NCBI GenBank assembly: GCA_002269645.1
Contig: NIVC01002600.1
Span: 62,001-126,000 of the forward strand
Length of the DNA stretch: 64,000 nt
Direction of reading: 5' to 3'
DNA from: Macrostomum lignano
Lineage: Eukaryota
The notes beneath the pieces were generated by a model, which did no database searches, was not told the origin of the DNA, and was given only the letters and a program-made list of their open reading frames with translations. The translations under genes were made by a program, and so were the position numbers. Shown here piece after piece: positions 1,878-64,000 of this stretch; within the stretch, counting starts at the first letter, position 1, and each line of letters starts with the position of its first letter.

Positions 1878-4800
1878 TCATCGCTTCCCCTGCACCTTAT
1901 CGGCAAGTTCTGTGAGTCTCCTGACCACCGCAGTGAGCGACAGCTTGGCTCCGGCCGACAGCGGCAGCAGCGGGAAGCCTGGCCGGCCGCGGTCGGCCAG
2001 CCAGTCGGCCAGCTGGTCGGCGTAGCTCCGCAAGCGAGTTTCAGCGTAGCGGCCGACCTCGGCAGCAAACGTGTCCGGCGGAGAGGAGACCAGACTGGCC
2101 ATCGACTGGGCGGTTCGGACCACGGCCAGCTCGTTGTATTCGCGACTCTTCACCGCGGCCGCCTGGGTGCCCTTCTCGTAGCCGGGCTCGTTGAATAGCG
2201 GCTCCTCGACTAGGATCAGGCCCTGCACCGACACCAGCACCTGGCGGCGGTCAAATGATTTTAGATAGGGATTTTAATGAGTTGGGATTTTCAGATGGGG
2301 ATTTTAATGAGTTGGGATTTTCAGATGGGGATTTTAATGAGGATTTGGGATTTTCAGATGAGATTTTAATGAGGATTTGGGATTCTCAGATGGGGATTTT
2401 AATGAAGATTTTGGATTTTAATGAGGATCTGGGATTCTCAGATGGGGATTTTAATGAAGATTTTGGATTCTCAGATGGGGATTTTATTGAGGATCTGGGA
2501 TTCTCAGATGGGGATTTTATTGAGGATCTGGGATTTTCAGATAAGGATTTTATTGAGGATCTGGGATTCTCAGATGGGGATTTTATTGAGGATCTGGGAT
2601 TTTCAGATAAGGATTTTATTGAGGATCTGGGATTCTCAGATGGGGATTTTAACTAGCTATCTGAGATACTGGATACAGACAAAAATCGAATATCTAGCAG
2701 TTCAACTACAAAAGCTCACCTGCAGCAGGTTTGATTCGCCCGGTGCCCACCGCTCAGTGCCCTGGCCGTCCCAGGTGCCCAGCAACGAGACGCACACCTT
2801 GCCGCACTCGTACAGGTTGGGATTGAGCCGACCAGAGCACATGGATCGATAGAGCAGGCGCGGCGGCTGAGCGGGATAAGCAGTGGGCAGATGAAGGTCG
2901 AATAGGAACAGGGCGCCAGAGTAGGGCGTGCCGGCCGGGCCCTCGATGAGAACGGCCATGAGGTCCATCCGGTCCTCGTAAGCCTTGACGGTGACGCCCC
3001 TGGGCAGGTGGTCGCCAAGAAGGGCCAGTTCGCGTCTCCAGGCGGAAATGAACGCCTTCGGCGGCAGGCCGGAACTGGAGAAGGCCGACTCGGCGTAGTG
3101 CAGATGCGTTGGCGGGGCGCATTCGACTAGGAGGAAGGTGCCGGCTCCGCCCTCGGCTGCCGGAGATGCGGTTGGACGTGCTGCTGGCTTGGAGGCCGAC
3201 GCTGGGTTTGAGGCTTGGCGATCCGTCTGCTCCTGTGATCGCCGCCAATGAACATACCGCTGAGCATTATTAACTGCGTCTGCATCCTTAGCTGTCCTTG
3301 TCCATATCCCTAGCTTTCATTGTCTATCCTTAGCTGTCTTTGTCATATCCCTAGCTTTCATTGTCTATCCTTAGCTGTCCTTGTCATATCCCTAGCTTTC
3401 ATTGTCTATCCTTAGCTGTCCTTGTCCATATCCCTAGCTTTCATTGTCTATCCTTAGCTGTCCTTGTCATATCCCTAGCTTTCATTGTCTATCCTTAGCT
3501 GTCCTTGTCCATATCCCTAACTTTCATTGTCTATCCTTAGCTGTCCTTGTCATATCCCTAGCTTTCATTGTCTATCCTTAGCTGTCCTTGTCATATCCCT
3601 AGCTTTCATTGTCTATCCTTAGCTGTCCTTGTCCATATCCCTAGCTTTCATTGTCTATCCTTAGCTGTCCTTGTCATATCCCTAGCTTTCATTGTCTATT
3701 CTTAGCTACCATTGCCCATCACTGCCTATCCTTAGCTACCATTGTCCATCACTGCCTATCCTTAGCTACCATTGTCCATCATTGCCTATCCTTAGCTACC
3801 ATTGTCCATCATTGCCTATCCTTAGCTACCATTGTCCATCATCGCCTATCGTTAGCTACCATTGTGTCCATCATTGCCTATCCTTAGCTACCATTGTGCA
3901 TCATTGCCTATCCTTAGCTGCCATTGTCCATTATTGGCCACCGACAGACCTGATCGGCAGTTCCGGTCCCAGCCGTAGACTCCGGCACCGCTACCTCGGC
4001 AATTTCGACTTGCATAACTCGGCAAATAGTGCCGCGAAAGAATTCCAGATTGTTGCGGGTAGCCTCGGTCAACTGGCTGCCCATGCGAAGTCGCACCTGA
4101 CCGTACAGCAGCTGCATCATCTCTTGCATGGCGTTGTACTGCATAGAGCGGGAGTGGGGTGGGGAGTAAATAAGAGTTTAAGCTCTGGAGTATGTACGAG
4201 CTAGAAGCAAAATGACTAATTCAATATATGGACTGCAGACTATACATGACAAGCACAGTCTTGGTCACAGGTGCAACGAAATTTAACTATATTTATTGCT
4301 GCAGTTGTTAATTCTCCAAAGTATTGATATCTACAAAAAAGTAACACTCCATACCTAAATTTCAGAGTTGTGCCACCCTGTCAAACAAGAGTGAAGCGAA
4401 AATTTTTATGTACTTCTATTGCAGCACTTTAATCTTTGAACCTGTCCGAAATTGTGTTACGGCTTTAATTAAGGTTTTTTATTGATTATTGAAGCAGTTT
4501 GGTATTAATCAAAAGTGGATTCTGGAATCTGGGTTTGGGTTTAGTCAACACGGCATAATATGAACCGTTAAACAGTATAGTATCGACAGTTTTTACGAGT
4601 TCGGTGGCACATCCCAAGAACATCATCAAGTTTAATAGACAGGCACAGGCTCAAGAAGCGTGCGCTCTTTAGTTAAAAACACGCTGTGTGCTTTTCTGCT
4701 TTGTTGAATTTATGATAAACAACATACTGCAAGGCCAGATTGGGATCGGAAAAGACTGACCGGCATTTCCCCTCAAAAGTCGATCGATTGCCGAGGAGCC

Positions 4801-7800
4801 GCCCAAAAGAGAAAATTGGCTTTGTCTTTTCCCCGCAAGTAGGAGAAAAAAGATAGAACTAGTTCAAGCTTCGATTTTCTCCTTACGATGGATGGACAAA
4901 AGCAACTAGAAATGAGCGGCAGGCAACGAAACTGACACTGCGGATAATCATGCGGCAGACTTGGATCAGCAACGTCAATGCCTATTACTAAAGCCAATAA
5001 GGGCATAGTGAGTTCTCAAATCAATAACAAGCTTCAGGTCATATTACCGATTATCTTCCACATATTTTAAATAGTTATTTCTTTTTGCGCATTTCTAATG
5101 TGTAATGAAAGTCCTTCAATATAATATTTTTATCGTCGTTATTTATTATGATAGAGATCTACAAGCTAGATAATAAAAAAACCATACCAGAAGAGCAAAC
5201 CTAATTATGTTTCCATAGCTACAGTTCATGACATTCGAATTTCAAACCGAGACACAAGCGGCTGAAATTGCATTTAATTTGCAAATGGCTCGTCAAGTTG
5301 GTTCAGTTGTATTATTTTCCAAAAAGAAATTATAGCTTTTAAACAAAAGCTTAAAGTTGAGAGTCGAGATTATTGAGAGTATGCGTGCGGCCAGTGGGGG
5401 AAATCGCATCCTGACATGACAAACACCGAAGCTTTACTCTGATAGGATCCAGCCCGTGGAAGCCAATTGGACTCAGCGCGCAATGCTGATGAAATGCGGA
5501 GCAAAACTGCAACCACCCCTGCTCCGTTGCAGGAAAGAGTGGGGATAAAAAGAGACAGAAATTCAACGCGAAGAAAGACACACTGGAGCGGCAACCTAGC
5601 TCTCCTAACTGGACTCCATAAAGCACAACTGGCAGAGTCAAGGAGTCAACTGATCGGCTTTTTCAGTTCAGCTTTAAACTATAGCGTGAAGAGCGAAAAT
5701 GAAGCCGAGGTGTAAGTACGCCCAATATGTGGCCATCTTGGTATCTTTGGCGGTGTTCTCAACCGCCTACGCTACGTCGACGGAGCAAAAGCAAGAGCAG
5801 CATCAGCCGGAAGCGCTGACGGGCGAGAATGAACCATCGGAATTTGAGGTTCGCAACCTGATGCAAGCACTGAGCGAAGTTAATAGCCCGACCGCGTACG
5901 ACCGAGAGCCCTACTACGATCAGGAGGACGACGGCGAAGAGCAAGAACTGGACGATGAGAGCTCGAACGACAAGAGGTTCACTCCGCTTCGTGGCAAGAG
6001 GTTCACTCCGCTTCGCGGCAAGAGGTTCACTCCGCTTCGTGGGAAGAAGTTTACCCCACTTCGCGGCAAGAGGTTCACTCCTCTTCGCGGCAAGAGGTTC
6101 ACTCCTCTTCGTGGCAAGAAGTTCACTCCGCTTCGTGGCAAGAAGTTCACTCCGCTTCGCGGCAAGAAGTTCACTCCGCTTCGCGGCAAGAGGTTCACTC
6201 CACTTCGCGGCAAGAGGTTCACTCCGCTTCGCGGCAAGAGATTCACTCTGCTTCGCGGCAAGAAGTTCACTCCGCTTCGCGGCAAGAGGTTCACTCCGCT
6301 TCGCGGCAAGAGGTTCACTCCACTTCGCGGCAAGAGGTTCTCGTTCACACCGCTCCGTGGCAAGAAGATGTTTGACGAACTTCAAGACTGAATTATAGAT
6401 TAATCGCGGAAACTTTGTTCGTGTTGTATGAATGAATAATACTCTAAGCTAACAAACACAATTTGCGGTTACAATGAGCCAGACAATAATATAATGCAAA
6501 CGTATACCAACAGAAAGCAGTTGAAGAAAGATTTGAATTGACGTTAAAACCCCGACTCGCATCCCATTGAATTCGGTGTCGCGCCTTTAATTTTCCTATT
6601 TTCTTCTCCCTCTCGCTCTCGCTCCGTAGAAATTGTGCCAGTGCAAACTGATGCAGCATCAGCGCGCTTAGATCTTTTTGTTGCGCATGCTGTTGAGAAG
6701 CGGAAATAAATATACTAATACAATAAGCCAGCGACCACTTCTGAGCAATCAAAGTAAAGACTGCACAACCTGTGCCACCCTTTAGAGAGAGAGAGTAACT
6801 TAGAATTGATATTTCGATTGATTCAGAATCTGCATAATAAAATTAGAGGGCGAAGCAAGTCAGATGCCAAGTATGAACCTGACAGAAGCTTGCAGTAGCT
6901 GATGAAGAGGATCGATCAGAGGAGCAGGCCCGAAAGCGAGTCAAACTAGCAAAGGAAGCGATCGAGTTGGAAACGAAAGGGCAGGAGAGACACAGGAAAC
7001 ACGAACTTCAAGCAGTCAAGCTAGGAAGAGCCACTAAAGAGTAGGAAATCCAGATGAAATCAGTCACAAAAAACACGGATTGCTTTCTACTTAGAAGGAA
7101 AATCTTCCTGAGTGCTAAGAGACTTAGCCAAAGAAGTGTGATGCTGCTTTCAGGATTAAGAATATCGCTTGCTTCAAGCCAGCAGTCTAAATGCCTGCAG
7201 AAAGTCCCATCTGAAGCCAGTTGACATCGGTAGCACTTGAAATATCAGCAAAAATCCGGGGCGTTGCTTGCATTAATATTCTAGCTCAAGGATACAAATG
7301 CACTGTAGGGTTTTAGACACCAAAATCTTGCGGAGATTTTAATATAGCTAAAAGGTGGATGTGACACAGGTTATAGTTCGTATGAGCATGATTATTTTTA
7401 ATAGCAGACAATTTTTTTTTCAGTTCAGAAGATGTCCGGAAAAGGTATAATAATTTATGTCGAACGTCTATGATGTAATGAACCGAATTAATTTTCCACC
7501 TACAATTAGGAGTGTTTTGACAATAAATATCTCAAGAACAAGCAATAAAAACAATTTAGTCTTACGTCTCTTTTTACTTTCTTTTAATGCTTTTTACTGC
7601 ATTTTTAATAGAGCCGAGGACAGCGCTTAAAAGGAAATACGAGCGTACTAGTTGCCTTTGCTTTGCCCCGCATATGCCATTTTCCTCTTAACACTTGATC
7701 CCAGTTGCATTTCACTTATTCTCGAACTTCTCTTATGCTTTGGTGAGTCCCCACTTGGGAGTTTTGCTCCATCAAGTATTACACGCCTAACTGAACTGCG

Positions 7801-10800
7801 GGACTGAATGGCTGGCCATGCATTTTTGGCCGAGTGCCGAGTAGTTTGAAGTACCAAGCAGAGAGGAAGCGTTATCGATGTAGGCGACACACGTCACAGA
7901 GCAAACAAAGTGAGAGCGAAATCGAGGAGAAAAATAGAGCAGAGAGCACCTATACTAGGGATTTCAATCTTTCTGATTGACATCAGAGAGAGGGAGAGAA
8001 ATGTTTTGTCAATTTGCGTTTTGTCAACATGGTTTACTAACACTTTCTTTCACACAGACTAGCTATATCAATTTGAATATATTAGGTAATTTTCTAGCTA
8101 GCGAACGAAAGCCTCACAGTCTGCAAATCCAATGGAGCAAATGGAGCAATTCAATTGTCATCTATGCTCGTGTTAATATCTCTAAGTTTGGTCACGTGCA
8201 GACGACAAACTCGTAACAGGTGAATTCAAAACCTCATTAGCTATAAAGGCCTTCTAATCCTTTATATTGTGGGCTAATTATGCAAATGAGCTAATGGAAG
8301 TGGGCGTCCCACATCGTGGCCTGATCATGATGCAGTTCTGCTATGCTATTTATTTCGCTGCCTTTCCTCATCAAGAGTATAAATGCGTGGGTGAGTACAA
8401 ATGTTGCCACAGGTATGTCTCACTTCTATAATATGCCTTCGGGCATATTATGTAATGTGATACCGTTGTGTCACAACCCGCCTTTAGTCAGGTGGAGTGA
8501 CCCCTTTGTCGTACTTCGTAGATTTTACTTCTCGCCTTCTGACTGTTCTTTTTCTGTATTTCCTACCATTCTCCTACCTACATCTGCCAGATCTCACAGC
8601 CTTCTCTCCCGTATATCTTACCATTCCTTATCATATTTTCTGCCATTCTTCCTATTATCTTCCACCACTCTCTTTCCATTAAAATATCTTCTCTCACCAC
8701 AATCCCTCATAGCGACAATAAAATTATCCTACCCAAGGGAGCAGAAGACTTGTGTGCAGATTTTGCCCCCCCCTCCTGCCAAAAGTCTACTGATTTTAGT
8801 GACATTGAAAATCTATTTGCAGTGCCAGAAATTTGCAGTGCTTTAGTAGAAATGAAGATCCTGTGCTTAAGGCGATTAGCTTCTCCCTCATCCCTAAGCG
8901 TGGGAACCAGGCCGCATGGGAATATTATCGCCCAGTTCTACGCCTAGTGTACCCCAGTACGTAGATAGAATCGCGGAAAAATATTCGACTAGCAGAGTGA
9001 TCGAGAAGGTATTAAAAAGTAAGGAGGGGAGCTGCGAATCATGCAAAAAAGTCGCTTGCTGCCAAGTTGTCACCACAGCTAGTCTCAAAGTGTGCCCCAG
9101 AGTAATCTTGCTTTATCCTATAACACATTTTAGGCTCACGTATCACGAAAGACGATGATAGGACTTATCCACAATCCAAACCAGATAATAGTTCACAACC
9201 AAAATGGCTTCGGTGCACGCAATGTGGTATGTAGCTAAACGAAGCTAACTTTAGTCTTCACTCCACGTTATGATGCTCTCTCTTCCTTAACTAATCCGTA
9301 TGGAAAATCTACACGAACATGGTAAACCGTATAATTAGTTTGAGTCTTTAAGCTTGAAGTCTTGAGATAACTTGAGCAATTCTCATTAGCTTGAAGTGTT
9401 GAGATAACTTGATAGCAATCTCCTTAGCTTGAAGTCTTGCGAAAACTTGATAGCAATCTCCTTAGCTTGAAGTGTTGAGATAACTTGATAGCAATCTCCT
9501 TAGCTTGAAGTCTTGCGAAAACTTGATAGCAATCTCCTTAGCTTGAAGTGTTGAGATAACTTGATAGCAATCTCCTTAGCTTGAAGTCTTGCGAAAACTT
9601 GATAGCAATCTCCTTAGCTTGAAGTCTTGAGATAACTTGATAGCAATCTCCTTAGCTTGAAGTGTTGAGACAACTTGATAGCAATCTCCTTAGCTTGAAG
9701 TCTTGAGATAACTTGATAGCAATCTCCTTAGCTTGAAGTCTTGAGTTAACTTGATAGCAATCTCCTTAGCTTGAAGTCTTGAGATAACTTGATAGCAATC
9801 TCCTTAGCTTGAAGTGTTGAGACAACTTGATAGCAATCTCCTTAGCTTGAAGTCTTGAGTTAACTTGATAGCAATCTCCTTAGCTTGAAGTATTGAGATA
9901 ACTTGATAGCAATCTCCTTAGCTTGAAGTCTTGAGATAACTTGATAGCAATCTCCTTAGCTTGAAGTGTTGAGATAACTTGATAGCGATTCTCCTTAGCT
10001 TGAAGTCCTGAGATAACTTGATAGCAATCTCCTTAGCTTGAAGTCTTGAGATAACTTGATAGCAATCTCCTTAGCTTGAAGTGTTGAGATAACTTGATAG
10101 CAATCTCCTTAGCTTGAAGTGTTGAGATAACTTGATAGCAAATCTCTTAAGCTTGAAGTCTTGAACATTAGCGATTGCGCAAAAAAGTAACTGATGCCAT
10201 TTTCCGTCAAATTTAGGGTTGAGTTTCAAAGTCAAAACGGCCATTGTTTTGACTAATTCGGAGAGATTATATTTTCAATCTTCAATCCAAGCCAGCCAAC
10301 GCCTTGTTTGCAGTCTTTCTAAAGTTTACCAAAGTGTTAAGCATTCTACTATGCATCGACGGACCTTCGTAGATTTCGATTCCATCGAAATTTTTTAAGA
10401 GAATAGATGAAGGTAAACCTGTTCTTACATATTTGAGAACAATGGGTAGTACGATTGACACACATCGACTTGTTTGGTCTAGAGTATTACATTACTACAG
10501 GCATATTTACTTTAAAAAACTATCAAATTTAGCAGTCTGAAAGCAGGAAGTGACACACCGAGAGAGTCAGGCAGGCATCCGCTACTGCCTCATCAAGGTA
10601 ATTCCAAACCTCCCCTAGTAAGCCAGGGAGACACTAACAACACAGTGAGTTACTGCAATCTAACTAGAAAGCCGCCGGGCCTATGGTAACTCGATTAAGC
10701 AATCTCGCCAAAAAGCTTACTCGCGCACACAGGATAAGGCTCTCTTAATATGCGCGTTAGAGAAGAGAATGAAAGTGACCTAAAGTAGACTCGATATGGA

Positions 10801-13800
10801 TCACCAGAGATAGGATGCATTGAATACGAGGCTTGAAAAAGCCGCAATTTATTGGAGTATATTTATACACATAGGACAGGAGTCCAGTGCGTTGACCTGC
10901 GATTCGCTAATGCAACAAGACAGCCGGCCAACCCAGTACGATATGCATATATGAGCGTACTAGTATGCACAACGACAGAACATGGTCTGTTATGTACAGG
11001 TGTATATCAACGAGCAAGATAAGTGTGCGTTAGCCATAAAAAGAGCTATTTATTATGATTTTTATTGTTCAAAAAGTAGATTGCTAAGCAAGAATAAATA
11101 GACCATTCTCCAGAGTTGCTCTAGCGGGTTTAGAGGGAATTACTAGAGAGTTCAGAGGGGAATATTGGAGGGTTCAGAGGAGAATGCTGGAGGGTTCAGA
11201 GGGGAATACTAGAAGCTCCAGAGGGGAATACTAGAAGCTCCCGAGGGGAATACTAGAAGCTCCCGAGGGGAATACTAGAAGCGCCAGAGGGGAATACCTA
11301 GAAGCTTCAGAGGGGCACAGCTGTTTGAAGACAATAGTATGCAATGCTTGGAAAGAATCAAAACAGTTCATTAGTTTATTCATAGCCATTTTATCTGCAG
11401 GCAATTTAGCTATGGAATTAGTTAGCTAACTAACAAATGCGCCCATCAATCCAATACTGATTCGCATTCAAGGCAGCCGATTCCGACATTAATCCGTTTC
11501 AAGCATTCTTTGTTACTCATCTCGGCTGGAGTGTATTTAATTACAAATGAATCGATTCTAAACCATTACTGGTTAGTCCTGTGAATTGTTGTTTCTTTGC
11601 AACCGATGCGCTCTCTGACAAGCTTGCCATACCCTTCAGGAGCGGCTTTATCATTGAGCCTGGACCAGAAATTATGTCTTTATACGCATCTTTTATCTTA
11701 CTAAAGTCCAGACATCGGGTTGAAATTCAATGCTCAATTCTACATTGAACGTGCGGACCCCACCACAGCGACATCAATATCAATATAGAAACAAAACAAC
11801 AAAAATTTAATCAAAATTAGTAAGGTTTAAACAAACAAATCATAAAAATCCACCCCTTAAAATGCTTATAAAACTAGTGATCCCAATCTTCCAACTAAGA
11901 ATCCCAACCTCAAAAACTAAGAATCCCAGCTTCAAAACTAAGAATCCCAACCTCAAGAACTAAGAATCCCAACCTCAAATACTAAGAATCTCAGCCTCAA
12001 AACTAAGAATCCCAGCCTCAAAACTAAGAATCCCAACCTCAAAACTAAGAATCGCAACCTTAAAACTTAAAATCCTAACCTCAAAACTAAGAATCCCAAC
12101 CTCAAACTAAGAATCCCAGCCTCAAAACTAAGAATCCCAACCTTAAAACTAAGAATCCCAGCCTCAAAACTAAGAATCCCAAACTTAAAACGAAGAATCG
12201 CAACCTCAAAACTAAGAATCCCAACCTCAAAACTAAGAATCCCAGCCTCAAAACTAAGAATCCCAACCTTAAAACTAAGAATCGCAACCTCAAAACTAAG
12301 AATCCCAACCTTAAAACTAAGAATCGCAACCTCAAAACTAAGAATCGCAACCTCAAAACTAAGAATCCCAACCTCTAAACTAAGAATCGCAACCTTAAAA
12401 CTTAAAATCCTAACCTCAAAACTAAGAATCCCAACCTCAAAACTATGAATCCCAACCTCAAAACTAAGAATCCCAACCTCAAAAACTAAGAATCCCAACC
12501 TCAAAACTAAGAATCCCAACCTTAAAACTAAGAATCCCAACCTCAAAACTAAGAATCGCAACCTCAAAACTAAGAATCCCAACCTCAAAACTAAGAATCC
12601 CAACCTCTAAACTAAGAATCGCAACCTCAAAACTAAGAATCCCAACCTCAAAACTAAGAATCCCAACCTCTAAACTAAGAATCGCAACCTCTAAACTAAG
12701 AATCCCAACCTCAAAACTAAGAATCCCAACCTTAAAACTAAGAATCCCAACCTCAAAACTAAGAATCCCAACCTCTAAACTAAGAATCGCAACCTCAAAA
12801 CTAAGAATCCCAACCTCTAAACTAAGAATCCCAGCTTCAAAACTAAGAATCCCAACCTCTAAACTAAGAATCGCAACCTTAAAACTTAAAATCCTAACCT
12901 CAAAACTAAGAATCCCAACCTCAAAACTATGAATCCCAACCTCAAAACTAAGAATCCCAACCTCAAAAACTAAGAATCCCAGCTTCAAAACTAAGAATCC
13001 CTACCTCAAAACTATGAATCGCAACCTTAAAACTTAAAATCCTAACCTCAAAACTAAGAATCCAAACCTCAAAACTATGAATCCCAACCTCAAAACTAAG
13101 AATCCCAACCTCAAAAACTAAGAATCCCAACCTCAAAACTAAGAATCCCAACCTTAAAACTAAGAATCCTAACCTCTAAACTAAGAATCCCAACCTCTAA
13201 ACTAAGAATCCCAACCTCTAAACTAAGAATCCCAACCTCAAAACTTAAAATCCTAACCTCAAAACTAAGAATCCCTACCTCTCAACTAAGAATCCCAGCC
13301 TCAAAACTAAAATTCCTAATCTCCAAAGAATCCTTCAGATGAATACGAACAAAGATCGGTCCCAAACTGCAGCTTTGAACTCCAATGGAAATGCAATAAG
13401 CAACAAACAAACAGCAGAAGGTCCAGACAGACAGGCAAATCAAACGCACATCTGGCACGTCCAACTGGGCGTCAGTGTCCAGCTCAGCAGGCGGCAAGTC
13501 GGGCCCGGCCCGCATCAGGCTGGTGGCCGACTGCCACAGGCGCCTAAGCGAGTCGGACAGCGGATTGGACACCCTCGGCACAAATGTTGGCACAACGCGT
13601 TGCTGCTGATCCACTAGCAGCTGCTCGTCGGGACGGCGCAGAGTGAGCGCGTGACGCAACGGCGCCAGCTTGTCCGGCATGGCCTCCGGATCGGTGAAGG
13701 CCTCCAGGCAGCCGGTGTCGGCGGTGAGGTGCCGCAGGTGGCTGGAGAACTGCAGCAGAGCCTGGCGCTGACTAGCTGTGGCATTGCGGCACAGGCAGGA

Positions 13801-15453
13801 CGGCCGAGAGCGCAGGTCGTGCAGCTGGGTGCGCAGGCCGTGGGCTGTCAGCAGGATGGTGTCCAGCGCCTGGTGGATGCTGTGCACTACTGTTGATGTT
13901 ACCGTACGACAGGCATTTGCGTTTACAGCCTCGCGTAGGCAGTCGGCAATGAGTCGCAGCGGCTCCCTGAGCTGGACACCAACCTAAAATGGCGGCAGCA
14001 TAGGACAGCAGCATTTAGAAAGCACAGAGTGCGATAGATGCTGTGACAGCCTGCGTGACAGCCGGTATGACAGCAACTACAGGCTGCAAAAATCACTGTG
14101 ACAGCAACTACAGGCGCAAAAATCACCGTGACAGCAACTACAGGCTGCAAAAATCACAGTGACAGCAACTACAGACTGCAAAAATCACCGTGACAGCAAC
14201 TACAGGCTGCAAAAAATCACCGTGACAGCAACTACAATATGCAAAAATCACAGTGACAGCAACTACAGGCTGCAAAAAATCACCGTGACAGCAACTACAG
14301 GCTGCAAAAATCACAGTGACAGCAACTACAGGCTGCAAAAAATCACCGTGACAGCAACTACAGACTGCAAAAATCACAGTGACAGCAACTACAGACTGCA
14401 AAAATCACCGTGACAGCAACTACAATATGCAAAAATTACCATGACAGCAATTACAGACTGCGACAGACTATAAAAAACCCACCTGTCTAGCGCAGGCCCA
14501 CTCATCCGAGCAGGAGGCGTGGTGCGGCAGCCAGCAATTCGAATTGGCGGCAGTAGCCACTCCGCCCATCTCGTCGTCTCCCTCTGTAGCCATAGCAACT
14601 ACATCGCCGCCGCTGGTGACTTGAACAACAATGCCTACTCGGTCAGCCTCGTCCGGCTCAGCGGTCTCTTCGCTCTCCGTCTCCCAGGATTCGTTATCGT
14701 CCGAGTCGGCTTCGAAATTGTTGAAAAAGCTCGAAGACTCGCTAGCCGAGCGTTGCTCCGGGCCGCCACTGAGAAGGCCTTCTAAACTAAATAACTCACT
14801 GGGCCACAGATCCGACTCTTGGCCGTCTAACCAGGCGACACGAATTTTGCCCTGCCGATATGTATCGAAAGAACACTTTATTAAGAAGTGATTCGCTAGG
14901 ATACATAATAAGACTACATACAAGCTAGAATAGGCCTAAATAGACTTATAGTTAGGTAATGCTTATACCGATATGTATCGAAAAGTAATTTTATTAACGC
15001 GCTCTTTTATAGAACATATATGGAATGCTATAAGAACCAAAAAATGAAGACAGAAACTGTTCCACTGACAGCCTAGCCCGCAACCTGCAATAGCTTTGTA
15101 GTTATAATAAGCTATTGCGTATGCTGTTGAGCAAACAACTGTAATAGACGGAGGCAGGAAGTGCGAATCACTGGGGGGGGGTTGAAGCACATATGTAGGC
15201 AGCAGAGTTCCCATCCTCAAATATATGTCGGATTTTCGGCAAACAAAAAAGAAGAATTACACTGGGGTAGTGGGGGCGGTTATTAGCTCAAGAAACAAGT
15301 TTAATTCCCGGTCTCTTTGAAGATCAGTTTGCATTGACACTAACAGCTGATTTAGCGATGAAATAGAATGAAACTGAATTAAACTTTTATTACCAGTTTT
15401 TACACTACGTATGCCAAGTGGATCAATCTATTTCTGAAGTATCTGTGTCAATT

Positions 15454-18900: not shown

Positions 18901-21900
18901 ATTAGCCAGCCTAAGCTAAGCCAAGCGGCTGTTTTCAAGCTAAACAAAGTTGAACTCTCTCTAGTTAAGTTATTGTTTAGCCAGGTCGATAGATTTGGGC
19001 AAACTGGAGGGGGGGGGGCGGAGAGTGAACTACAGTCTGTCTGTAGAGTCTTGTCGATTACATTACACAGCATAGTTCCGGTTTAATGCATCCCATACCG
19101 GCACGCTCAGCTTGTCAAATTGATCTATAATAAGAAATTCATTAATCATCGATTGTGTACGGTCGATCAATTTCAGCTACAGCTCAGGAACACTTATTGA
19201 CTTTACTGCCGTTATTAAACATCTGTATTATATTATGTTATTACTATCATTTAATATATTATATCTGTGATGGAATTGGTCTGGCTGTCGGTCTGTCTGT
19301 CGGTTTGTATGTCTGTCTGTCTTAGTGTCTGTCTGTCTGCCTGTCTGTCAGTGCCTGTCTGTGTCTCTCTGTCGTCTGTCTGTCAGACAAGTGTAGCAGT
19401 CCGATCTACGATATAAGCATCATGAAATACATCATACTGATCAGACCTACCGATATGCATATTTACTAACTTGACTTAATTACATTGATTTATCGCAAGA
19501 CACTAACAAAAGGACTGCACCAAAGGACCATTGAGGGGCTGCTTAACCGAAGGAGAATTAGGGCGGGGTTCTCAAACGAAGGACCATTGGGGGCTCAACC
19601 GAAGGACCATAGGGCGGCTCAACCGAAGGACCATGGGGCGGCTCAACCGAAGGACCATAGGGCGGCTCAACCGAAGGACCATGGGGCGGCTCAACCGAAG
19701 GACCATGGGGCGGCTCAACCGAAGGACCATAGGGCCGCTCAACCGAAGGACCATGGGGCGGCTCAACCGAAGGACCATGGGGCGGCTCAACCGAAGGACC
19801 ATAGGGCGGCTCAACCGAAGGACCATAGGGCGGGGTTCTCAAACGAAGGACCATTGGGGGCTCAACCGAAGGACCATAGGGCGGCTCAACCGAAGGACCA
19901 TGGGGCGGCTCAACCGAAGGACCATGGGGCGGCTCAACCGAAGGACCATGGGGCGGCTCAACCGAAGGACCATAGGGGGGGGGTTGCTCAACCAATGGAC
20001 CATGGGGGGGGGCTGCTCCACCGAAAGGGAGTCTGGCTACTCAACAAAAATAATCCACACGGCGCCTTAAATGAAGACTTTACAGGAGAAGTAATAATAA
20101 AGCATCAGCTTTAAGCCAAATCCAACAATCATTAAGTGGGACAGTACTCATGCAGCAGTGCTCTGCCAGAAAGAGAAGATTAATGAAATATTGATGCTTC
20201 AAATTGCCGATTGTAAATTCGCGCATCTTTTAAGAGATGACAGAATGTAATTAATAATTAATTTATTCACCTCTGGGAAGCCGTAAAAATGGGACTAAGT
20301 GTAACTTTCTGTCTCTCTCTTGAAAAATGAACTCATTAGAAATTTAGCAAAAGTTTCACAAGTGCCTGCCACAGTAAAAGCTGTCTACTCTTAAAGAGTC
20401 AATGCAAAAAATATTGAAAAATCGGAATAAAAAACTTTCTGGCATTTTCGCTATTTACTTTATAGGGAAAGTGCAGAACCAACGCGTGTAAAGCAATAAA
20501 TAATCACAGTTTATTCCACTTAGTCAGTGCTTGCTTGAACCCACGCAAAGCTGCATCCTTGACCCACTTTGACAGACCCAAAACTCACGCGAAGCTGCTT
20601 CCTTGACCCACTTGGACCCACGCAGACAGATGCGGACTCACGCAAAGCTGCATCCTTGACCCACTTGGACCCACGCAGACAGATGCGGACTCACGCAAAG
20701 CTGCATCCTTGACCCACTTGGACCCACGCAGACAGATACGGACTAACGCGAAGCTGCATCCTTGACCCACTTGGACCCACGCAGACAGATGCGGACTCAC
20801 GCAAAGCTGCATCCTTGACCCACTTGGACCCACGCAGACAGATGCGGACTCACGCAAAGCTGCATCCTTGACCCACTTGGACCCACGCAGACAGATGCGG
20901 ACTCACGCAAAGCTGCATCCTTGACCCACTTGGACCCACGCAGACAGATACGGACTCACGCGAAGCTGAAACCCTTGACCCACTTGGACCCACGCAGACA
21001 GATGCGGACTCACGCGAAGCTGCATCCTTGACCCACTTGGACCCACGCTGACAGACCCGGACTCACGCAAAGCAGCCGAGAGTCAGCCTGTCCACCACAG
21101 CAGGCCGGTCGCTGCCAATGGCGGGATTGCAGGCCAGCAGGCGGCTCGCCTCCAGCTCTTTAGGCAGGTCGCCAAGCGGCCTGACAGTCAGACAGGGGAA
21201 GCAGAAGTGCCAATCAACTTCGAAGCTGCTCGGCTTGACGCTAATAACCTCGGCAACAAGTCGCCGCCGGCTCACAGCACGCCTTAGCGCGGCAGGATTG
21301 GAGCCGAATCGAATCCATTGAATCTCGGATCGAAGGGTGTGCAGTACGCCCGGGTGCAGCTCGACAAAGGCGCCGCGGTACAGCCGGTCGCTGCAGAACG
21401 GATGCGACTGGTTCGCGGAGAAATCGCCGATAACCCGAGTGTCGCCGTACTCCAGCACGTGCGCCGGCGCGCGGATTCTGTTTGTGTTGGTTGGCAGGAG
21501 AATTGGGAGAGCTGATGAGGCTTAACAGTTGAGATGCTGGAGAAACTCATCAGTCTATGTCTGATATCTATGTAAACAATATACTCGTAGCTGACATACA
21601 ATGATCATTGCACAATGACCAGCTATATGAAGCTGAGGACCCTGAACAATGACCAGCTATATGAAGCTGAGGACCCTGCACAATGACCAGCTATATGAAG
21701 CTGAGGACCCTGAACAATGACCAGCTATATGAAGCTGAGGACCCTGCACAATGACCAGCTATATGAAGCTGAGGACCCTGCACAATGACCAGCTATATGA
21801 AGCTGAGGACCCTGAACAATGACCAGCTATATGAAGCTGAGGACCCTGCACAATGACCAGCTATATGAAGCTGAGGACCCTGCACAATGACCAGCTACAT

Positions 21901-24453
21901 GAAGGTGAGGACCCTGCACAATGACCAGCTACATGAAGGTGAGGACCCTGCACAATGACCAGCTATATGAAGCTGAGGACCCTGCACAATGACCAGCTAT
22001 ATGAAGCTGAGGACCCTGAACAATGACCAGCTATATGAAGCTGAGGATCCTGCACAATGACCAGCTATATGAAGGTGAGGACCCTGAACAATGACCAGCT
22101 ACATGAAGGTGAGGACCCTGCACAATGACCAGCTACATGAAGGTGAGGACCCTGCACAATGACCAGCTATATGAAGCTGAGGACCCTGAACAATGACCAG
22201 CTATATGAAGCTGAGGATCCTGCACAATGACCAGCTATATGAAGCTGAGGACCCTGAACAATGACCAGCTACATGAAGGTGAGGACCCTGCACAATGACC
22301 AGCTACATGAAGGTGAGGACCCTGCACAATGACCAGCTATATGAAGCTGAGAACCCTGAACAATGACCAGCTATATGAAGCTGAGGACCCTGCACAATGA
22401 CCAGCTATATGAAGGTGAGGACCCTGCACAATGACCAGCTATATGAAGCTGAGGACCCTGAACAATGACCAGCTACATGAAGGTGAGGACCCTGCACAAT
22501 GACCAGCTATATGAAGGTGAGGACCCTGCAGTGCCCCGAATGCTGATGTATTAGGAACCTACATGAATTACGAGTATGGGGTTAGCATTGCTCCACAGAG
22601 ACCAAATTAATGACTTTCATTAAATCCTACAAAAGTCCCTAACACAATTGTCATGCACATTAATTCATTTCCGAGACTCCCAGCTGAGTACCAGACGGCT
22701 AAGATTACAGAGGCGACAGGAAATTAAAAAGATTCAAATTCAATAATTAATATTAAATAAGAAAGATCGTGAGATTTCTCTTCTCAATGCAACCATAAAT
22801 TAATTGCAGGCAATAAATTTCGAAAAAAATCTTTGATCACTCAGTTCACAGAGTTGTGTGGGCGGGTTTAGCAAAATCAATGAATTATAAATCAGATGCA
22901 ATAAAAATCTATATAAAAGTCGAACTATTCCGCTAGCATAAGTTATTATCGCGAATGTAAAAGAGGGGGTCATAAATGCTAGCTATTTTAAGTTTCAAAT
23001 ACTCGTAATTAAGCTTCTTCATGCTGAAAAAAGAAGCTACTTAATCTAAGTAGCCAGTTGCGTATTCGAATATTAAACAGCAAATAATAATGAGGCAAGC
23101 AGCTTACACGGAGCCGTCGACAAATTTGAGTTCCACCAGTTCCCGCGAAATGGACTGCACAGAGCCGTACCAGCCGTCGTACTGGACTGATTGGCGACCG
23201 AGTTCGTCAATGAACTGTCAATCAAAGGCAAGGGAGTTCGTTTCTTTTTAAAACTTCCTAGTGGTTAGAGCGGCGGACTCACGACTTGAAGGTCGGGGGT
23301 TCGATTCCCGATCCAACTGGAACAATTTGTCCTTGAGCAAGACACTTAACTCTGTCTTCCAAAACCACTATAGCGTTTCCCTAACGTGTACGATAGGGGA
23401 TCCTACCATGTACGATGGGGAATCCTACCATGTACGAGTTCAATTGGGAATCTCACTATGTACCAGTACAAAGGGAAATCCTACCATGTACGAGTTCGAT
23501 TGGGAATCTCACTATGTACCAGTACAAAGGGAAATCCTACCATGTACAAAAAATCCTATCATGTACAAATTGAAATTCTTACTATGTACGATGGGAAATC
23601 CTACCATGTACGATGGGAAATCCTACCATGTACGATGGGAAATCCTACCATGTACGATGGGAAATCCTACCATGTACGAGTTCGATTGGGAATCTCACTA
23701 TGTACCAGTACAAAGGGAAATCCTACCATGTACGAGTTCGATTGGGAATCTCACTATGTACCAGTACAAAGGGAAATCCTACCATGTGCAAAAAAATCTT
23801 ATCATGTACAAATTGAAATTCTTACTATGTGCGATGGGAAATCCTACCATATACGATGGGAAATCCTACCATGTACGATGGTAAATCCTACCATGTACAA
23901 TGGGAAATCCTAGCATGTGCGATGGGAAATTCAAAGCGTACACTGGATGGTCGAACTACCAATAAACGAATTGAATAATCTGAGCTAGACTCACATTGCC
24001 GCACAGGATGCGATCAGCCGAGACCCCGGCAATCAACCTGCTATAGCCGGGCACGTACAGGTGGCACTGGCGTCGCGTGGCCTCAACAGTGCCAGCTTGT
24101 CCAGCCTCGTCGTTGGCCCATCTGACCGCGTCGCCAGTCGAGAAGGCTCTATCAACAATGCTAACAACAGGCTCGGCGCCGCTATGGTTACTAAAATCGG
24201 CTGGCGTGGCGGCAACCTGAGTTGGGTCGAGCTCGCCGGTAGCGCCGCTGCACAGCCAGTCAACAGATGGATTAAGCCGTGGCTCCTCCGACGGTGCGTC
24301 TTCGTAATCTTCAACCTCCACTATGCCGATATCGGCGTAGCGCCTGTCGCGATCCAGTCGAACTACTAGATCGTCCAGGTAGAGACGGCATCCATTATTG
24401 GTGCTGTTGCTGGCGTTGGCGTCTGAGACGGCTTCAGCTACTCCTCCGTTCAT
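1878..24453 (-). CDS. UBE2O: E2/E3 hybrid ubiquitin-protein ligase UBE2O, complete, 10 exons, ~1315 aa
   Basis: Exons (minus strand, in order): 24453-23995, 23214-23108, 21477-21067, 17968-17393, 16887-16461, 14851-14483, 13983-13450, 4138-3950, 3232-2720, 2240-1878. All introns are GT..AG and phase-compatible; total 3948 nt = 1316 codons. The C-terminal UBC domain AYEDRMDLMAVLIEGPAGTPYSGALFLFD...RLNPNLYECGKVCVSLLGTW...LLQVLVSVQGLILVEEPLFNEPGY retains the catalytic Cys. UBE2O-specific motifs are present (VDVRWQDG, FFPGDFV, WETESEE, C-terminal GFPLLPLS). The 107-bp exon 2 (YDGWYGSV) is missed by the ORF track. Confidence 0.95.
2258..2652. repeat. Minisatellite, ~33 bp, in UBE2O intron 9
   Basis: GATTTTATTGAGGATCTGGGATTCTCAGATGGG units. 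Confidence 0.93.
3285..3932. repeat. Compound minisatellite (~42-43 bp then ~30 bp) in UBE2O intron 8
   Basis: TATCCTTAGCTGTCCTTGTCATATCCCTAGCTTTCATTGTC grading into TATCCTTAGCTACCATTGTCCATCATTGCC. Confidence 0.93.
5699..6391 (+). CDS. Neuropeptide precursor: signal peptide, acidic spacer and 16 amidated peptides (14x FTPLRamide, 1x FTLLRamide, 1x FSFTPLRamide); tachykinin/natalisin-like FxxxRamide
   Basis: 230-aa ORF with a hydrophobic N-terminus (YVAILVSLAVFSTAYA), a D/E-rich pro-region and (KR/KK)-FTPLR-G units giving dibasic cleavage plus a Gly amide donor. Synonymous third-position variation between units (ccg/cca/cct, cgc/cgt) indicates selection on the protein. AG acceptors lie at 5665-5666 and 5683-5684, just upstream of the ATG. 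Confidence 0.93.
   Translation: MKPRCKYAQYVAILVSLAVFSTAYATSTEQKQEQHQPEALTGENEPSEFEVRNLMQALSEVNSPTAYDREPYYDQEDDGEEQELDDESSNDKRFTPLRGKRFTPLRGKRFTPLRGKKFTPLRGKRFTPLRGKRFTPLRGKKFTPLRGKKFTPLRGKKFTPLRGKRFTPLRGKRFTPLRGKRFTLLRGKKFTPLRGKRFTPLRGKRFTPLRGKRFSFTPLRGKKMFDELQD
9345..10165. repeat. 38-bp minisatellite (~21 copies)
   Basis: AGCTTGAAGTCTTGAGATAACTTGATAGCAATCTCCTT units. Confidence 0.95.
11135..11315. repeat. Short ~22-24 bp tandem array
   Basis: GAGGGGAATACTAGAAGCTCC units. Confidence 0.8.
11895..13315. repeat. 21-bp minisatellite (~65 copies)
   Basis: AAAACTAAGAATCCCAACCTC units. Confidence 0.96.
14040..14460. repeat. ~31-bp minisatellite in UBE2O intron 6
   Basis: GTGACAGCAACTACAGGCTGCAAAAATCAC(C/A) units. 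Confidence 0.93.
15455..16005. repeat. (TCTG)n microsatellite with TCTTAGTG interruptions
   Basis: Directly visible. Confidence 0.95.
16255..16430 (+). mobile_element. SINE family A partial copy
   Basis: CAGGCACAGTGTACATGCCTGACGATTAGAAAGTCAGGGCCGCTGTACACCCTG core. Confidence 0.7.
18082..18452. repeat. 62-bp tandem array (6 copies) abutting a SINE
   Basis: CGCTACCCTACCACAGCAGGGTGAACTGCAGCTCAGTGTACTCAGTTTACAGGGGGCTTTTA units. Confidence 0.93.
18455..18665 (-). mobile_element. SINE family A copy (reverse)
   Basis: The reverse complement reads GCTCAGCGGTAAAC...GGGTTCGATC...GAGGCACAGAGTGTGTACATGTCTCATAATGAGAAAAGTC...CCGCTGTACACCCTG. Confidence 0.7.
19560..20005. repeat. 24-bp minisatellite
   Basis: GGCTCAACCGAAGGACCAT(A/G)GGGC units. 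Confidence 0.93.
20535..21072. repeat. 53-bp minisatellite overlapping the UBE2O exon 3 splice donor
   Basis: GACTCACGCAAAGCTGCATCCTTGACCCACTTGGACCCACGCAGACAGATGCG units. Confidence 0.93.
21610..22530. repeat. 34-bp minisatellite (~27 copies)
   Basis: CAATGACCAGCTATATGAAGCTGAGGACCCTG(C/A)A units. Confidence 0.96.
23258..23360 (+). mobile_element. SINE family B partial copy
   Basis: CTAGTGGTTAGAGCGGCGGACTCACGACTTGAAGGTCGGGGGTTCGATTCCCG...TGTCCTTGAGCAAGACACTTAAC; another partial copy lies at ~56075-56145. Confidence 0.7.
23380..23930. repeat. Compound ~22-bp minisatellite in UBE2O intron 1
   Basis: TGTACGATGGGAAATCCTACCA units and variants. Confidence 0.9.
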
Positions 24454-29040: not shown

Positions 29041-30228
29041 TCACAGACCAAACGCTCCGATACCGTTCAGCAATTCAGAATTTCGAAACTCCGATCCGAA
29101 TGCCGCATTATTGTCCTCGCTTCCGCCAATTTTAGCGCCCTGGGCGCCACCTGCTGTGCAATTAGTCGGATAATTAACAACGCAGCGACCATCGTAATCG
29201 TCAACTTCTTCTGACGATGGCGACGGTTCGATAGAAATTGCTGCTGTTGCTGCTGCTGCCGTGAAAGAGCTCTTAGCGAGTTTAATTCGCTTTATATTGC
29301 CACTAGACGATGCGACTGAGGAGGCGGCGGTTGGAGGCCTTCGGGCATAGAATCGAGCCTTTTCCTCGTCGGTGAAACCAACACCGCGTTTGCGACAGTT
29401 GCGAAATTTTTGACTCAGCCGATTCTTCCAAAGCGACAAGGCGTCCTCTGGTGGCAGGCCTTCGTCCAGTTGAGGATAAAGCGACAGAAGAGCTTCGGCC
29501 ACCTCGGCGTACTGACTGGTCTTTGGATAGAAGGTGTACTGGCGAATCTGCTGGAACAGAATATCCAACAGGCGGGTCAATTCGTCCCGGCTGAGCGCCC
29601 CGCCTCCGCCGGCGTTGAACACGGCGGCCGATAATGACGGGTCGAACCGGTCAACGGGAATGACGAATGGAGATGGCCAGTTGCTAGGCTGGTCGGCCGA
29701 GGCCGGTGCTGAACAGTCAACGGACGGCGTTGGCGATTGAGTCGGCGTTGGCGTTGACACCGTCACCTGATGCGGCGGCTGCTGCGGAGGCGGTGGCGGC
29801 GGCGGCAGCAGAGACAATGGCAATGAAAGCGACACTGACAATGGCGGAGGCGGCGAAGCCTGCTGCTGCTGCTGCGGCAGACAGGAAGATAAAGCAGTAT
29901 CGCTAGGCAACGAGTCATCGCATTCTATTAAAGCCTCATTACTGTTATGATTGTTGGTGCTAACAACAAATGAGGTAGCGGCAGAAGCAGCAGAAGTTGA
30001 CGGCGGAGGTGTCAGTGGTATAGCCAATAACCGTGTATTAGCCTGCAGCTCATTATCATCAGCTATTGGAAATTCGACATCAAGCCAGTCAGCGTAGGCG
30101 TCATGCCAGCGCTGCAACAGCAGCGGCTGGCGAACATTGAAACGACTGCAGATGGCCGATTCTAAGCTGTTAAGACAGTTGACAGATACCAGCTTTTTGT
30201 GCCTGCCGCAAGTAACATGAAACTCCAT
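29041..30228 (-). CDS. Uncharacterised intronless 395-aa protein; N-terminal PB1/ubiquitin-like domain, Pro/Gln/Ser linker, SAMD3-like helical domain
   Basis: Long GC-rich ORF between AT-rich flanks. The motif WPSPFVIP...LLDILFQQIRQYTFYPKTSQYAEVAEALLSLYPQL...LWKNRLSQKFRNCRKR resembles the YPxxxQYxxVAxALxxxxPxL...WKxxLxxKFxNxR signature of SAMD3-like proteins (recalled from memory, not searched). Confidence 0.7.
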   Translation of the reverse strand: MEFHVTCGRHKKLVSVNCLNSLESAICSRFNVRQPLLLQRWHDAYADWLDVEFPIADDNELQANTRLLAIPLTPPPSTSAASAATSFVVSTNNHNSNEALIECDDSLPSDTALSSCLPQQQQQASPPPPLSVSLSLPLSLLPPPPPPPQQPPHQVTVSTPTPTQSPTPSVDCSAPASADQPSNWPSPFVIPVDRFDPSLSAAVFNAGGGGALSRDELTRLLDILFQQIRQYTFYPKTSQYAEVAEALLSLYPQLDEGLPPEDALSLWKNRLSQKFRNCRKRGVGFTDEEKARFYARRPPTAASSVASSSGNIKRIKLAKSSFTAAAATAAISIEPSPSSEEVDDYDGRCVVNYPTNCTAGGAQGAKIGGSEDNNAAFGSEFRNSELLNGIGAFGL

Positions 30229-39849: not shown

Positions 39850-41217
39850 ATGTCCAGCACAGCTGATGACAATGACGACAATGGAGAAGATCGCGCCGTG
39901 CTTGTGCAGTTTGTCAGCGAGACTGGCGAGGAAGCTGGGCCGCCCCTGCAGGCTCTGCTGGGATCTACAGTAGCAGATCTAAAGGCGACACTCGATGCTC
40001 AATTGATAGTCCAGAGTGGGGATTATGATGATCAAGTTATTTATAAGTGAGTAGTATGCTTTGCTAGGTAGTGCGTTAGGGAGTTAGTAGGGGGGGGGGG
40101 CTTGTCAATTCTTTGGGAAATGATTCGCCCCCCCCCCCCGGTGATCAAAATAGCTCTACAATATGCGCAGCTTAATGAAAACCAAGAATTTTTGCTTCAG
40201 GGTGCCAAAAAAGGCCTGCGGCGCCAAAGGGAGTGTCTGTGGCGCCAGAAGGAGTGCCTTTGGTGCTAAAATGAGAGTCTTCGGCGACAAAATAAGTGTC
40301 TGCAGTGCCAAAATGAGTGCCTGCAGCGCTAAGATGAGTACTTGTGGTGCCAAATTGAGTGCCTATGGCGCCAAAAATGAGTGCCTTTGGTGCCAAAATG
40401 AGTGCCTGCGGCTCCAAAATAAGTGCTCAGCGGCGCTAAAATAAATTTAGCCGGATATGAAAGCTGATTAATAACCTAAATTAAATATAGCTGCGCGTAG
40501 ATTCGAACCTGCGACTAACTGCGCCCTACATATTCCCTACCCCAGATTTTTCGTAGACGAAGCGGAAGTGGCCACCAGTCTAGCTGGCGCTGTCGACTGC
40601 GGCCGAGTCAACGAGCGCCTGCTCCGCATAGTCTACCAACCGCAAGCGCTGTTTCGTGTCCGCCCGGTGACTCGCTGCACCTCCAGCTTGCCCGGCCACT
40701 CGGAGGCCGTCCTATCGGCGGCATTCTCGCCTGACAGCCGGAATTTGGCCAGCGGATCCGGAGACGCCGCCGTCAGATTCTGGGACTTGTCAACCGAGAC
40801 GCCTTTGCACGAGTGTCGGGGACACAAGCACTGGGTGCTGTGCATTGCCTGGTCGCCGGACGGCCGGCGCCTGGCCAGCGCCTGCAAGCGCGGCCAGATT
40901 TGCCTGTGGTGCCCGGACACTGGCAAGCAGATTGGCCGGCCGCTGGCTCGGCACACGCAGTGGGTGACCAGCTTGGCTTGGCGACCGCTGCATCTGGATT
41001 CTGAGTGCAGATTATTGGCATCGGCGTCTAAGGATTGCACTGTGATACTGTGGGACACCATTGTTGGACAGGTTAGCCGGGTTATTAGCGGACACGAGCA
41101 GGCCGTGACTCAGGTGAGTAACTTGGGGGCTGTGTTGATTTTTTAAAATTTTAAATAAATAGGAAAGGTGGATAGACGGGCAGACAGACAGACACTAAGG
41201 TTGGCAGACAGACAGAC

Positions 41218-63059: not shown

Positions 63060-64000
63060 TTTCAGTGCCGATTTTCAATGGCGATTCTCAATGACGATTT
63101 TCAATGGCGATTCTCAATGACGATTTTCAATGGCGATTCTCAATGACGATTTTCAATGGCGATTCTCAATGACGATTTTCAATGGCGATTCTCAATGACG
63201 ATTTTCAATGGCGATTCTCAATGACGATTTTCAATGGCGATTCTCAATGACGATTTTCAATGGCGATTCTCAATGACGATTTTCAATGGCGATTCTCAAT
63301 GACGATTTTCAATGGCGATTCTCAATGACGATTTTCAATGGCGATTCTCAATGACGATTTTCAATGGCGATTCTCAATGACGATTTTCAATGGCGATTCT
63401 CAATGCCGATTTTCAATGGCGATTCTCAATGACCATTTTCAATGGCGATTCTCAATGGCGATTCTCAATGCCGATTTTCAATGGCGATTCTCAATGACGA
63501 TTTTCAATGGCGATTCTCAATGACGATTTTCAATGACGATTTTCAATGGCGATTCTTAATGACGATTTTCAATGGCGATTCTCAATGACGATTTTCAATG
63601 GCGATTTTCAATGACGATTTTCAATGGCGATTCTCAATGACGATTTTCAATGGCGATTCTCAATGACGATTTTCAATGGCGATTCTCAATGACGATTTTC
63701 AATGGCGATTCTCAATGACGATTTTCAATGGCGATTCTCAATGACGATTTTCAATGGCGATTCTACTGGCCGATTTTCAATGGCGATTCTACTGGCCGAT
63801 TTTCAATGGCGATTCTACTGGCCGATTTTCAATGGCGATTCTACTGGCCGATTTTCAATGGCGATTCTACTGGCCGATTTTCAATGGCGATTCTACTGGC
63901 CGATTTTCAATGGCGATTCTACTGGCCGATTTTCAATGGCGATTCTACTGGCCGATTTTCAATGGCGATTCTACTGGCCGATTTTCAATAGCGATTCTAC
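63060..64000. repeat. 26-bp (13+13 dimeric) minisatellite with a variant sub-array from ~63760
   Basis: CGATTTTCAATGG CGATTCTCAATGA switching to CGATTTTCAATGG CGATTCTACTGGC. Confidence 0.95.

Follow-up and report, generated by a model that had tools for sequence, protein, structure and literature searches.

A predicted 16-copy FTPLRamide precursor gene of a flatworm, Macrostomum lignano: a possible tachykinin-type ligand

The stretch of DNA considered here (hereafter the window) comprises 64,000 nucleotides of the flatworm Macrostomum lignano, positions 62,001-126,000 of contig NIVC01002600.1 in assembly GCA_002269645.1 (Mlig_3_7; PMC5730564). On its plus strand, at 5699-6391, lies an open reading frame (ORF) with the layout of a multicopy amidated peptide precursor, in which 16 near-identical FTPLR-Gly units follow a predicted signal peptide and an acidic spacer; the whole is placed within a long intron of a UBE2O-like gene on the opposite strand. 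GenBank already carries a gene call at identical coordinates on this contig, with exactly the same protein. The sole basis of this assembly's annotation is RNA-seq transcripts assembled under guidance of the genome, with StringTie/TACO, the TBONE pipeline for boundaries and TransDecoder, and non-coding and repeat-overlapping models were stripped from it before submission (PMC5730564). Because the annotation is purely transcript derived, a transcript model exists, by this indirect route, for the peptide gene; and, since the gene was both called and retained, it is neither hidden nor dismissed as a minisatellite. A preliminary description of the locus had held it to be hidden and had supposed that an annotation pipeline could discard it as a 24-bp minisatellite, and both of these suppositions fall, the gene having been kept despite the repeat-overlap filter. 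It is nonetheless a called yet unnamed and uncharacterised gene: we found no name or description of an FTPLR peptide in the searchable literature, and a full-text search for FTPLR strings, which did not cover the Macrostomum expressed sequence tag survey of McVeigh et al. 2009, returned only an unrelated sNPF paper. The gene and its immediate surroundings consist of the following features.

5545-5551, plus strand: ATAAAAA, resembling a TATA box, 154 nt upstream of the ATG, a weak candidate core promoter element
5699-6391, plus strand: complete single-exon coding sequence with ATG start and stop included, for a 230-residue prepropeptide; ORF parse and identical GenBank call
5699-5773, plus strand: residues 1-25, MKPRCKYAQYVAILVSLAVFSTAYA, as predicted signal peptide, to be cleaved after A-Y-A; classical rules
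5774-5971, plus strand: acidic spacer propeptide, residues 26-91 (66 residues), 21 Asp/Glu against 3 Lys/Arg, isoelectric point 4.05; composition
5972-6361, plus strand: array of 16 units of the form K[KR]-peptide-Gly, from residue 92; parse and Tandem Repeats Finder
6362-6391, plus strand: final dibasic KK, acidic C-terminal peptide MFDELQD and stop; parse
6435-6710, plus strand: AATAAT at 6435 and at 6485 and AATAAA at 6705, candidate poly(A) signals; consensus matches only

The coding sequence starts with an A at position -3 of the ATG, an in-frame stop at 5687 (12 nt upstream) and a leader of 202 nt (5497-5698) that lacks an ATG in any frame. The signal peptide was called by rule: its n-region is basic (K2, R4 and K6), its h-region (V11-F20) is a hydrophobic core of 10 residues with 9-residue Kyte-Doolittle means of 2.4-3.1 in the windows starting at residues 10-13, and its c-region, A-Y-A followed by T, has the small residues at -3 and -1 that the rule expects. 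Within the array, 14 units read FTPLRG, one reads FTLLRG (6236-6259) and the last reads FSFTPLRG (6332-6361), the sole unit length variant, which arises from an in-frame insertion of 6 nt. The punctuation is kept throughout: in 16 of 16 units K[KR] precedes the peptide, and Gly and a further K[KR] follow it, with no disruption of the frame. Adjacent units abut directly, with neither spacers nor a pre-motif between them, and at the DNA level Tandem Repeats Finder reports a period of 24 bp, 15.4 copies, 92% matches and 0% indels. The parse thus bears out the anatomy that had been described earlier, namely a signal peptide, an acidic spacer and then 16 dibasic-flanked, Gly-terminated peptides (14 FTPLR, FTLLR and FSFTPLR) with silent variation between the units.

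This silent variation is the first of three independent lines of evidence that set the array apart from its repeat-rich background. An alignment of the 16 units has nine variable columns, seven of them at codon position 3, with 11 distinct variants. Read in the frame of the ORF, nine are synonymous and two are non-synonymous, which departs from the neutral expectation of 26% synonymous (binomial p=2e-4). The two replacements are one of Arg by Lys in the second dibasic residue and a single one of Pro by Leu; Arg and Lys are functionally equivalent for cleavage at a dibasic site. None of the other five frames of the peptide array has an excess of synonymous variants, and nothing comparable occurs in five control minisatellites (other arrays of the window whose periods are multiples of 3), the 30 frames of which give a best p of 0.04. 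Hence, there is purifying selection on the peptide frame among the paracopies. A second line of evidence comes from the 273 nt of unique sequence that precede the array. Here the GC content at the three codon positions is 0.62/0.35/0.69, and the difference between the third and second positions, 0.34, lies within the range of the bona fide exons of the window (0.18-0.35) and above that of every one of 972 null windows (maximum 0.22), which were taken, with phase and strand permuted, from those stretches of the host intron that are free of repeats. The coding sequence as a whole is likewise richer in GC (0.55-0.58) than its flanks (0.41-0.42). The third line is the context of the start codon given above, with its upstream stop, its A at -3 and its leader free of ATG.

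The observed anatomy of the ORF, the selection on its frame, its exon-like composition and its transcript-derived gene model belong to a locus that is probably both functional and transcribed, a prepropeptide gene of M. lignano with a single exon. That the product is a processed secretory peptide precursor we consider very probable, and for its cleavage, amidation, expressing cell type and receptor we infer the following course. The product would enter the endoplasmic reticulum and the secretory pathway cotranslationally by means of the 25-residue signal peptide; a prohormone convertase would cut after each KR or KK pair; a carboxypeptidase would trim the basic residues; and peptidylglycine alpha-amidating enzymes would use the Gly thus exposed to amidate the C-terminus. 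One precursor molecule would then yield 14 copies of FTPLR-NH2, one of FTLLR-NH2 and one of FSFTPLR-NH2 (calculated [M+H]+ of 632.3878, 648.4191 and 866.4883, respectively), together with the acidic spacer and MFDELQD. A PC2 homologue with a strong RNA interference (RNAi) phenotype has been reported in M. lignano (PMC4490696). On our preferred reading, the ligand would be a neural or endocrine peptide that acts on a rhodopsin-type G protein-coupled receptor (GPCR). That the pentapeptide hardly varies despite synonymous drift points to a tightly constrained interaction between ligand and receptor. Taken together, it is well supported that the FTPLR gene is a new multicopy amidated peptide precursor within a well-known class.

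As to the identity of the ligand, the units FTPLR-Gly, FTLLR-Gly and FSFTPLR-Gly fit the C-terminal pattern F-x-x-x-R-amide, if amidation is granted, and tachykinin-related peptides and natalisins have FxxxRamide in common. The protostome tachykinin-related peptides would therefore be, as judged from the peptide sequences, the single most likely named family for the FTPLR peptides, and the gene is a plausible first candidate for a tachykinin-type peptide in flatworms. Within Spiralia, a review table lists FGFAPMRa and FRFTALRa from oyster, YGFHALRa from scallop, QPPQGFHAVRa from Platynereis and AYPSGFTMPRa from Capitella (Nässel et al. 2019, Suppl. Table S1). Spiralian tachykinins thus relax the X2 position (FAPMRa, FTALRa, FHAVRa), so that a Pro at X2 is not disqualifying within Spiralia. 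Tachykinin-type receptors, moreover, are ancient and widespread in spiralians, are also found in xenacoelomorphs and have been reported in one monogenean. The boldest reading, with a probability of roughly 0.3, is that flatworms do have a tachykinin-type ligand, long missing, and that it is FTPLR-NH2, cut down to the bare five-residue core that activates the receptor and amplified to 16 copies. Its status as a true tachykinin-type ligand, taken on its own, is plausible but less likely than not, for it rests on the five-residue motif.

Several findings weigh against this assignment. The position X2, canonically Gly (FxGxRamide), is here occupied by Pro and once by Leu; 15 of the 16 units are bare pentapeptides with no N-terminal extension, and only FSFTPLRa reaches seven residues; the copy number is far above that of spiralian tachykinin precursors; and an anchor of two residues, Phe at -5 and the Arg-amide, can arise by convergence. 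Reviews report no tachykinin from any flatworm, and a survey of GPCRs in the liver fluke (Fasciola) never mentions tachykinin. Among 51 planarian prohormones, there is no comparable multicopy Arg-amide (R-Gly-dibasic) precursor. Neither word-indexed searches nor HMMER nor BLASTP found homology to tachykinin precursors beyond the units. A word-indexed search with the whole precursor gave 8000 candidates, none significant, and one with the non-repeat N-terminal 101 residues gave no candidate; a scan of metagenome contigs gave 472 pattern matches, none confirmed; and HMMER, run exhaustively over 1.84 billion representatives, gave no homologue of the precursor outside its repeat part. Tachykinin precursors are generally poorly conserved outside their peptides, and this lack of precursor homology is only weakly informative. 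An exact-sequence cluster look-up did not contain the precursor protein, although it is present in the gene-position index; with the protein itself missing from the collections searched, the lack of Macrostomum paralogues or orthologues is uninformative. Of the earlier proposal of a tachykinin/natalisin-family ligand, then, the fit to the FxxxR-amide motif holds, while the precursor has no similarity outside its units and orthology to natalisin is unlikely.

The HMMER scan did return 416 matches with E-values down to 1.8e-70, all of them aligned to residues ~86-220 only. We reject these E-values as a sign of homology, for they are driven by the repeat, and most of the matches are unrelated repeat proteins (with PSTGKT, PVVEKK and other units). 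Among the best 150 of the 416, the only multicopy FxPxR-Gly-dibasic precursors are four arthropod natalisin-like proteins: one (P0026) has DDPF[YFI]PMRGRR units, and in the other three the units read SSFMPMRGRR, FFPLRGKK and FFATRGKR. These units agree with published natalisin sequences, namely FxPxRamide and the ...DDPFFATRa of DmNTL4. The spiders Parasteatoda tepidariorum and Uloborus diversus are the source of two of the four, both annotated as "uncharacterized", and BLASTP against the Uloborus protein finds likeness only in the units and in the composition of the acidic spacer. As an observation in its own right, the spider entries (P0090/P0151, XP_042905745.1, from Parasteatoda tepidariorum, and P0097, XP_054719796.1, from Uloborus diversus) carry 11-13 (S)SFMPMRG[RK][RK] units in addition to FFPLRGKK and FFATRGKR, and by their sequences XP_042905745.1 and XP_054719796.1 look like unnamed natalisin-type precursors. 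Two further proteins, P0132 (ENA) and P0058 (JGI/IMG), contain multicopy AFNPWGGKR or FTPWGGKR units with the leucokinin-type FxxWG-amide pattern, and P0132 has a weak match to the Pfam "Kinin" model; these surfaced only by way of the common KR-F-x-P-x-x-G-KR layout.

The strongest alternative to a tachykinin-type ligand is that the gene encodes a genuine amidated neuropeptide precursor restricted to macrostomorphs or to flatworms, with an FxxxR-amide end that is convergent and a receptor that is not of the tachykinin type; the latter could be another rhodopsin-type GPCR, an orphan flatworm-specific rhodopsin or a peptide-gated DEG/ENaC channel. Such an origin accords with the lack of similarity to any precursor outside the five-residue units and of a counterpart among planarian prohormones. 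It accords equally with the many phylum-restricted peptide families of flatworms, among which no tachykinin has been found, with a pentapeptide length and a Pro at X2 that are atypical for tachykinins and with a motif that has just two fixed residues. Against it, Phe at -5 together with a C-terminal Arg-amide is typical of tachykinin-related peptides and natalisins and rare elsewhere in protostomes; FTPLRa is a single substitution away from FTALRa, the end of the oyster peptide Cragi-TK3; and tachykinin-type receptors do occur in spiralians, xenacoelomorphs and one monogenean. We regard a lineage-specific origin as quite possible, if somewhat short of even odds.

A different possibility is that the product is secreted and processed by convertases in a gland that is not neural (adhesive, reproductive, defensive or rhabdite), with peptides that act externally or on a mate. 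The furin-type consensus, R-X-K/R-R, is likewise matched by the R-G-K-R of ten units, so that processing need not involve the regulated neuronal pathway; and the absence of detected homologues is what one would expect of a fast-evolving secretory gene. The Gly, however, is strictly kept before every dibasic site, which points to amidation, and amidation is a hallmark of neural and endocrine peptides. Moreover, a pentapeptide that stays near-invariant over 16 copies despite synonymous drift suggests a constrained ligand rather than a rapidly evolving secretion. We therefore consider a glandular role unlikely and retain the reading of the product as a neural or endocrine peptide.

It might also be supposed that the array is a non-functional 24-bp minisatellite, open by chance, and that the gene model is an artefact of intronic or antisense transcription combined with an ORF caller. 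The window is indeed rich in such sequences: 28 tandem arrays with a Tandem Repeats Finder score of at least 200 (for example, at 11893-13310, 19571-19978, 9351-10164, 21609-22530 and 63042-63998) make up 22.4% of it. Where the period is a multiple of 3, several of the arrays are open over long distances on both strands, with ORFs of 130 and up to 310 residues, which makes ORF length a poor indicator of genes in the M. lignano genome. Four other frames of the peptide array are open too, and these, along with the ORFs of the other arrays, mean that an open frame is in itself no evidence. Nor is there a homologue in any database searched. Yet the synonymous excess is specific to one frame and missing from the control arrays; the ORF runs 273 nt into unique sequence with an exon-like third-position GC content above all 972 null windows; this unique part encodes a signal peptide that conforms to the rules; the dibasic and Gly punctuation is perfect in all 16 units; and the gene was kept by a pipeline that excluded repeat-overlapping models. 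We thus reject the minisatellite explanation as very improbable. There is a lesson here for annotation, in that frame-specific synonymous drift tells a peptide array from junk repeats in a minisatellite-rich genome.

Finally, a bradykinin/kininogen-type precursor is effectively refuted: although the Pfam "Bradykinin" model (PF06753) scores 56 bits (E=2.7e-15) against a cut-off of 20.7 bits and FTPLR resembles the FTPFR/FSPFR end of bradykinins, no stretch is individually significant, the score adds up 16 weak matches that lie at positions 8-14 of the 19 in the profile, the units lack the RPPG half, and they end in a Gly amidation donor where bradykinins end in a free Arg. The model is built from amphibian skin precursors, for which orthology to a flatworm gene is not plausible. 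Separately, the PF06753 score over 5972-6361 could lead automated annotation to mislabel the peptide gene as a bradykinin/kininogen.

The surroundings of the peptide gene were read as follows.

2720-3259, minus strand: UBE2O-like exon downstream of the host intron, with the UBC catalytic core (...NPNLYECGKVCVSLLGTW...); Pfam UQ_con 2.8e-17
3260-13449, minus strand: host intron of 10,190 nt, GT..AG, with both junctions in phase 0
13450-13887, minus strand: UBE2O-like exon upstream of the host intron, ending ...AQLDVPD/gtgcgt; splice reading at its 3' end

The public record has a minus-strand gene of 1315 residues, with UQ_con and SH3-B/SH3-C_UBE2O domains, which spans the peptide ORF, and our Pfam scans of the minus-strand exon translations agree with a UBE2O-like identity. 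The 3' boundary of the exon at 2720-3259 was inferred from the GTGAGT donor after ...NLLQ. The peptide gene had been described as nested antisense within a 9.3-kb intron of UBE2O; the nesting stands, the 1315-residue gene spanning the ORF on the minus strand, and the length needs correction to 10,190 nt. Genes nested on the opposite strand of a long intron are a common arrangement, and we attach no special meaning to this one. The host intron carries 3,079 nt of other minisatellites (~30% of its length) and is ~8 times the published mean for introns of this genome, which is 1.1-1.4 kb (PMC5730564). Elsewhere in the window, exons of a WD40 beta-propeller gene lie on the plus strand at 40568-41146 and 42115-42498 (Pfam WD40, 1.9e-29 and 8.5e-38), ~34 kb downstream of the peptide gene. 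An ATG-initiated ORF of 395 residues on the minus strand at 29041-30228, with Pro, Ser and Gln tracts and no Pfam match, may be a single-exon gene. An Rfam scan of the window gave no matches.

If FTPLR-NH2 is a tachykinin-type ligand, then tachykinin signalling would survive in the early-branching Macrostomorpha, although none has been found in planarians or in flatworm parasites, and the transgenesis-capable M. lignano would become a model for a minimal tachykinin system. The peptide is a concrete candidate that can be synthesised, and it makes the question of whether flatworms lost tachykinin signalling experimentally addressable in a species with both RNAi and transgenesis. Even should the family link fail, a new and highly amplified Arg-amide pentapeptide joins the flatworm repertoire; and flatworm neuropeptide signalling is a target space of practical interest for anthelmintics.

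Among the known peptide systems, the pyrokinin/PRXamide peptides (FxPRLamide) resemble the FTPLR units in having Phe and Pro within a short amidated C-terminal core. We reject this family: FTPLR ends in P-L-R-amide, lacks PRL-amide and has its Arg at a different position, and the earlier judgement that it is not a pyrokinin is confirmed by the predicted C-terminus, ...PLR-NH2. The planarian mpl, npp and spp precursors (Collins et al. 2010) resemble the FTPLR precursor in overall layout, with a signal peptide, cleavage sites of the dibasic kind, Gly as amide donor and more than one paracopy, and in their dependence on PC2-type processing. Planarian prohormones differ in their C-termini, which are RL/RMamide, RFamide, RRVVamide, Wamide and others.

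The arthropod natalisins (FxPxRamide/FWxxRamide; Jiang et al. 2013, 2016) are closer in layout, with many F-x-P-x-R-Gly-dibasic units and acidic spacers. In copy number, the natalisin-like matches have 11-15 units per precursor, and the natalisin of Manduca, according to a review, has up to 15, next to the 16 of the FTPLR precursor; the spider natalisin-like unit FFPLRG is one residue away from FTPLRG. In contrast, natalisin peptides are 15-24 residues long in Drosophila, carry a conserved pre-motif such as DDPF (as in DmNTL4, HRNLFQVDDPFFATRa) and are set apart by spacers, and neither pre-motif nor spacers are found with the FTPLR units. Natalisin, the sister of arthropod tachykinin, has been reported only from arthropods and tardigrades, and a flatworm orthologue would therefore require that history to be revised. 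Orthology of the platyhelminth FTPLR gene to this restricted family is thus unlikely, and natalisin is an analogue of the FTPLR precursor, not its orthologue.

The spiralian tachykinins share with the FTPLR precursor a C-terminal F-x-x-x-R-amide, dibasic-flanked and Gly-amidated paracopies on one precursor and a spiralian host. Their peptides have 7-12 residues and number 2-7 per precursor, as against 15 pentapeptides among 16 copies here, and it is this reduction to a pentapeptide repeated 16-fold that is the unusual trait of the FTPLR gene. For Crassostrea gigas, the Table S1 of Nässel et al. 2019, which cites Dubos et al. 2018, lists both Cragi-TK3 (FRFTALRa) and Cragi-TK1 (FGFAPMRa); the latter ends in FxPxRa and has, like FTPLRa, a Pro at X2.

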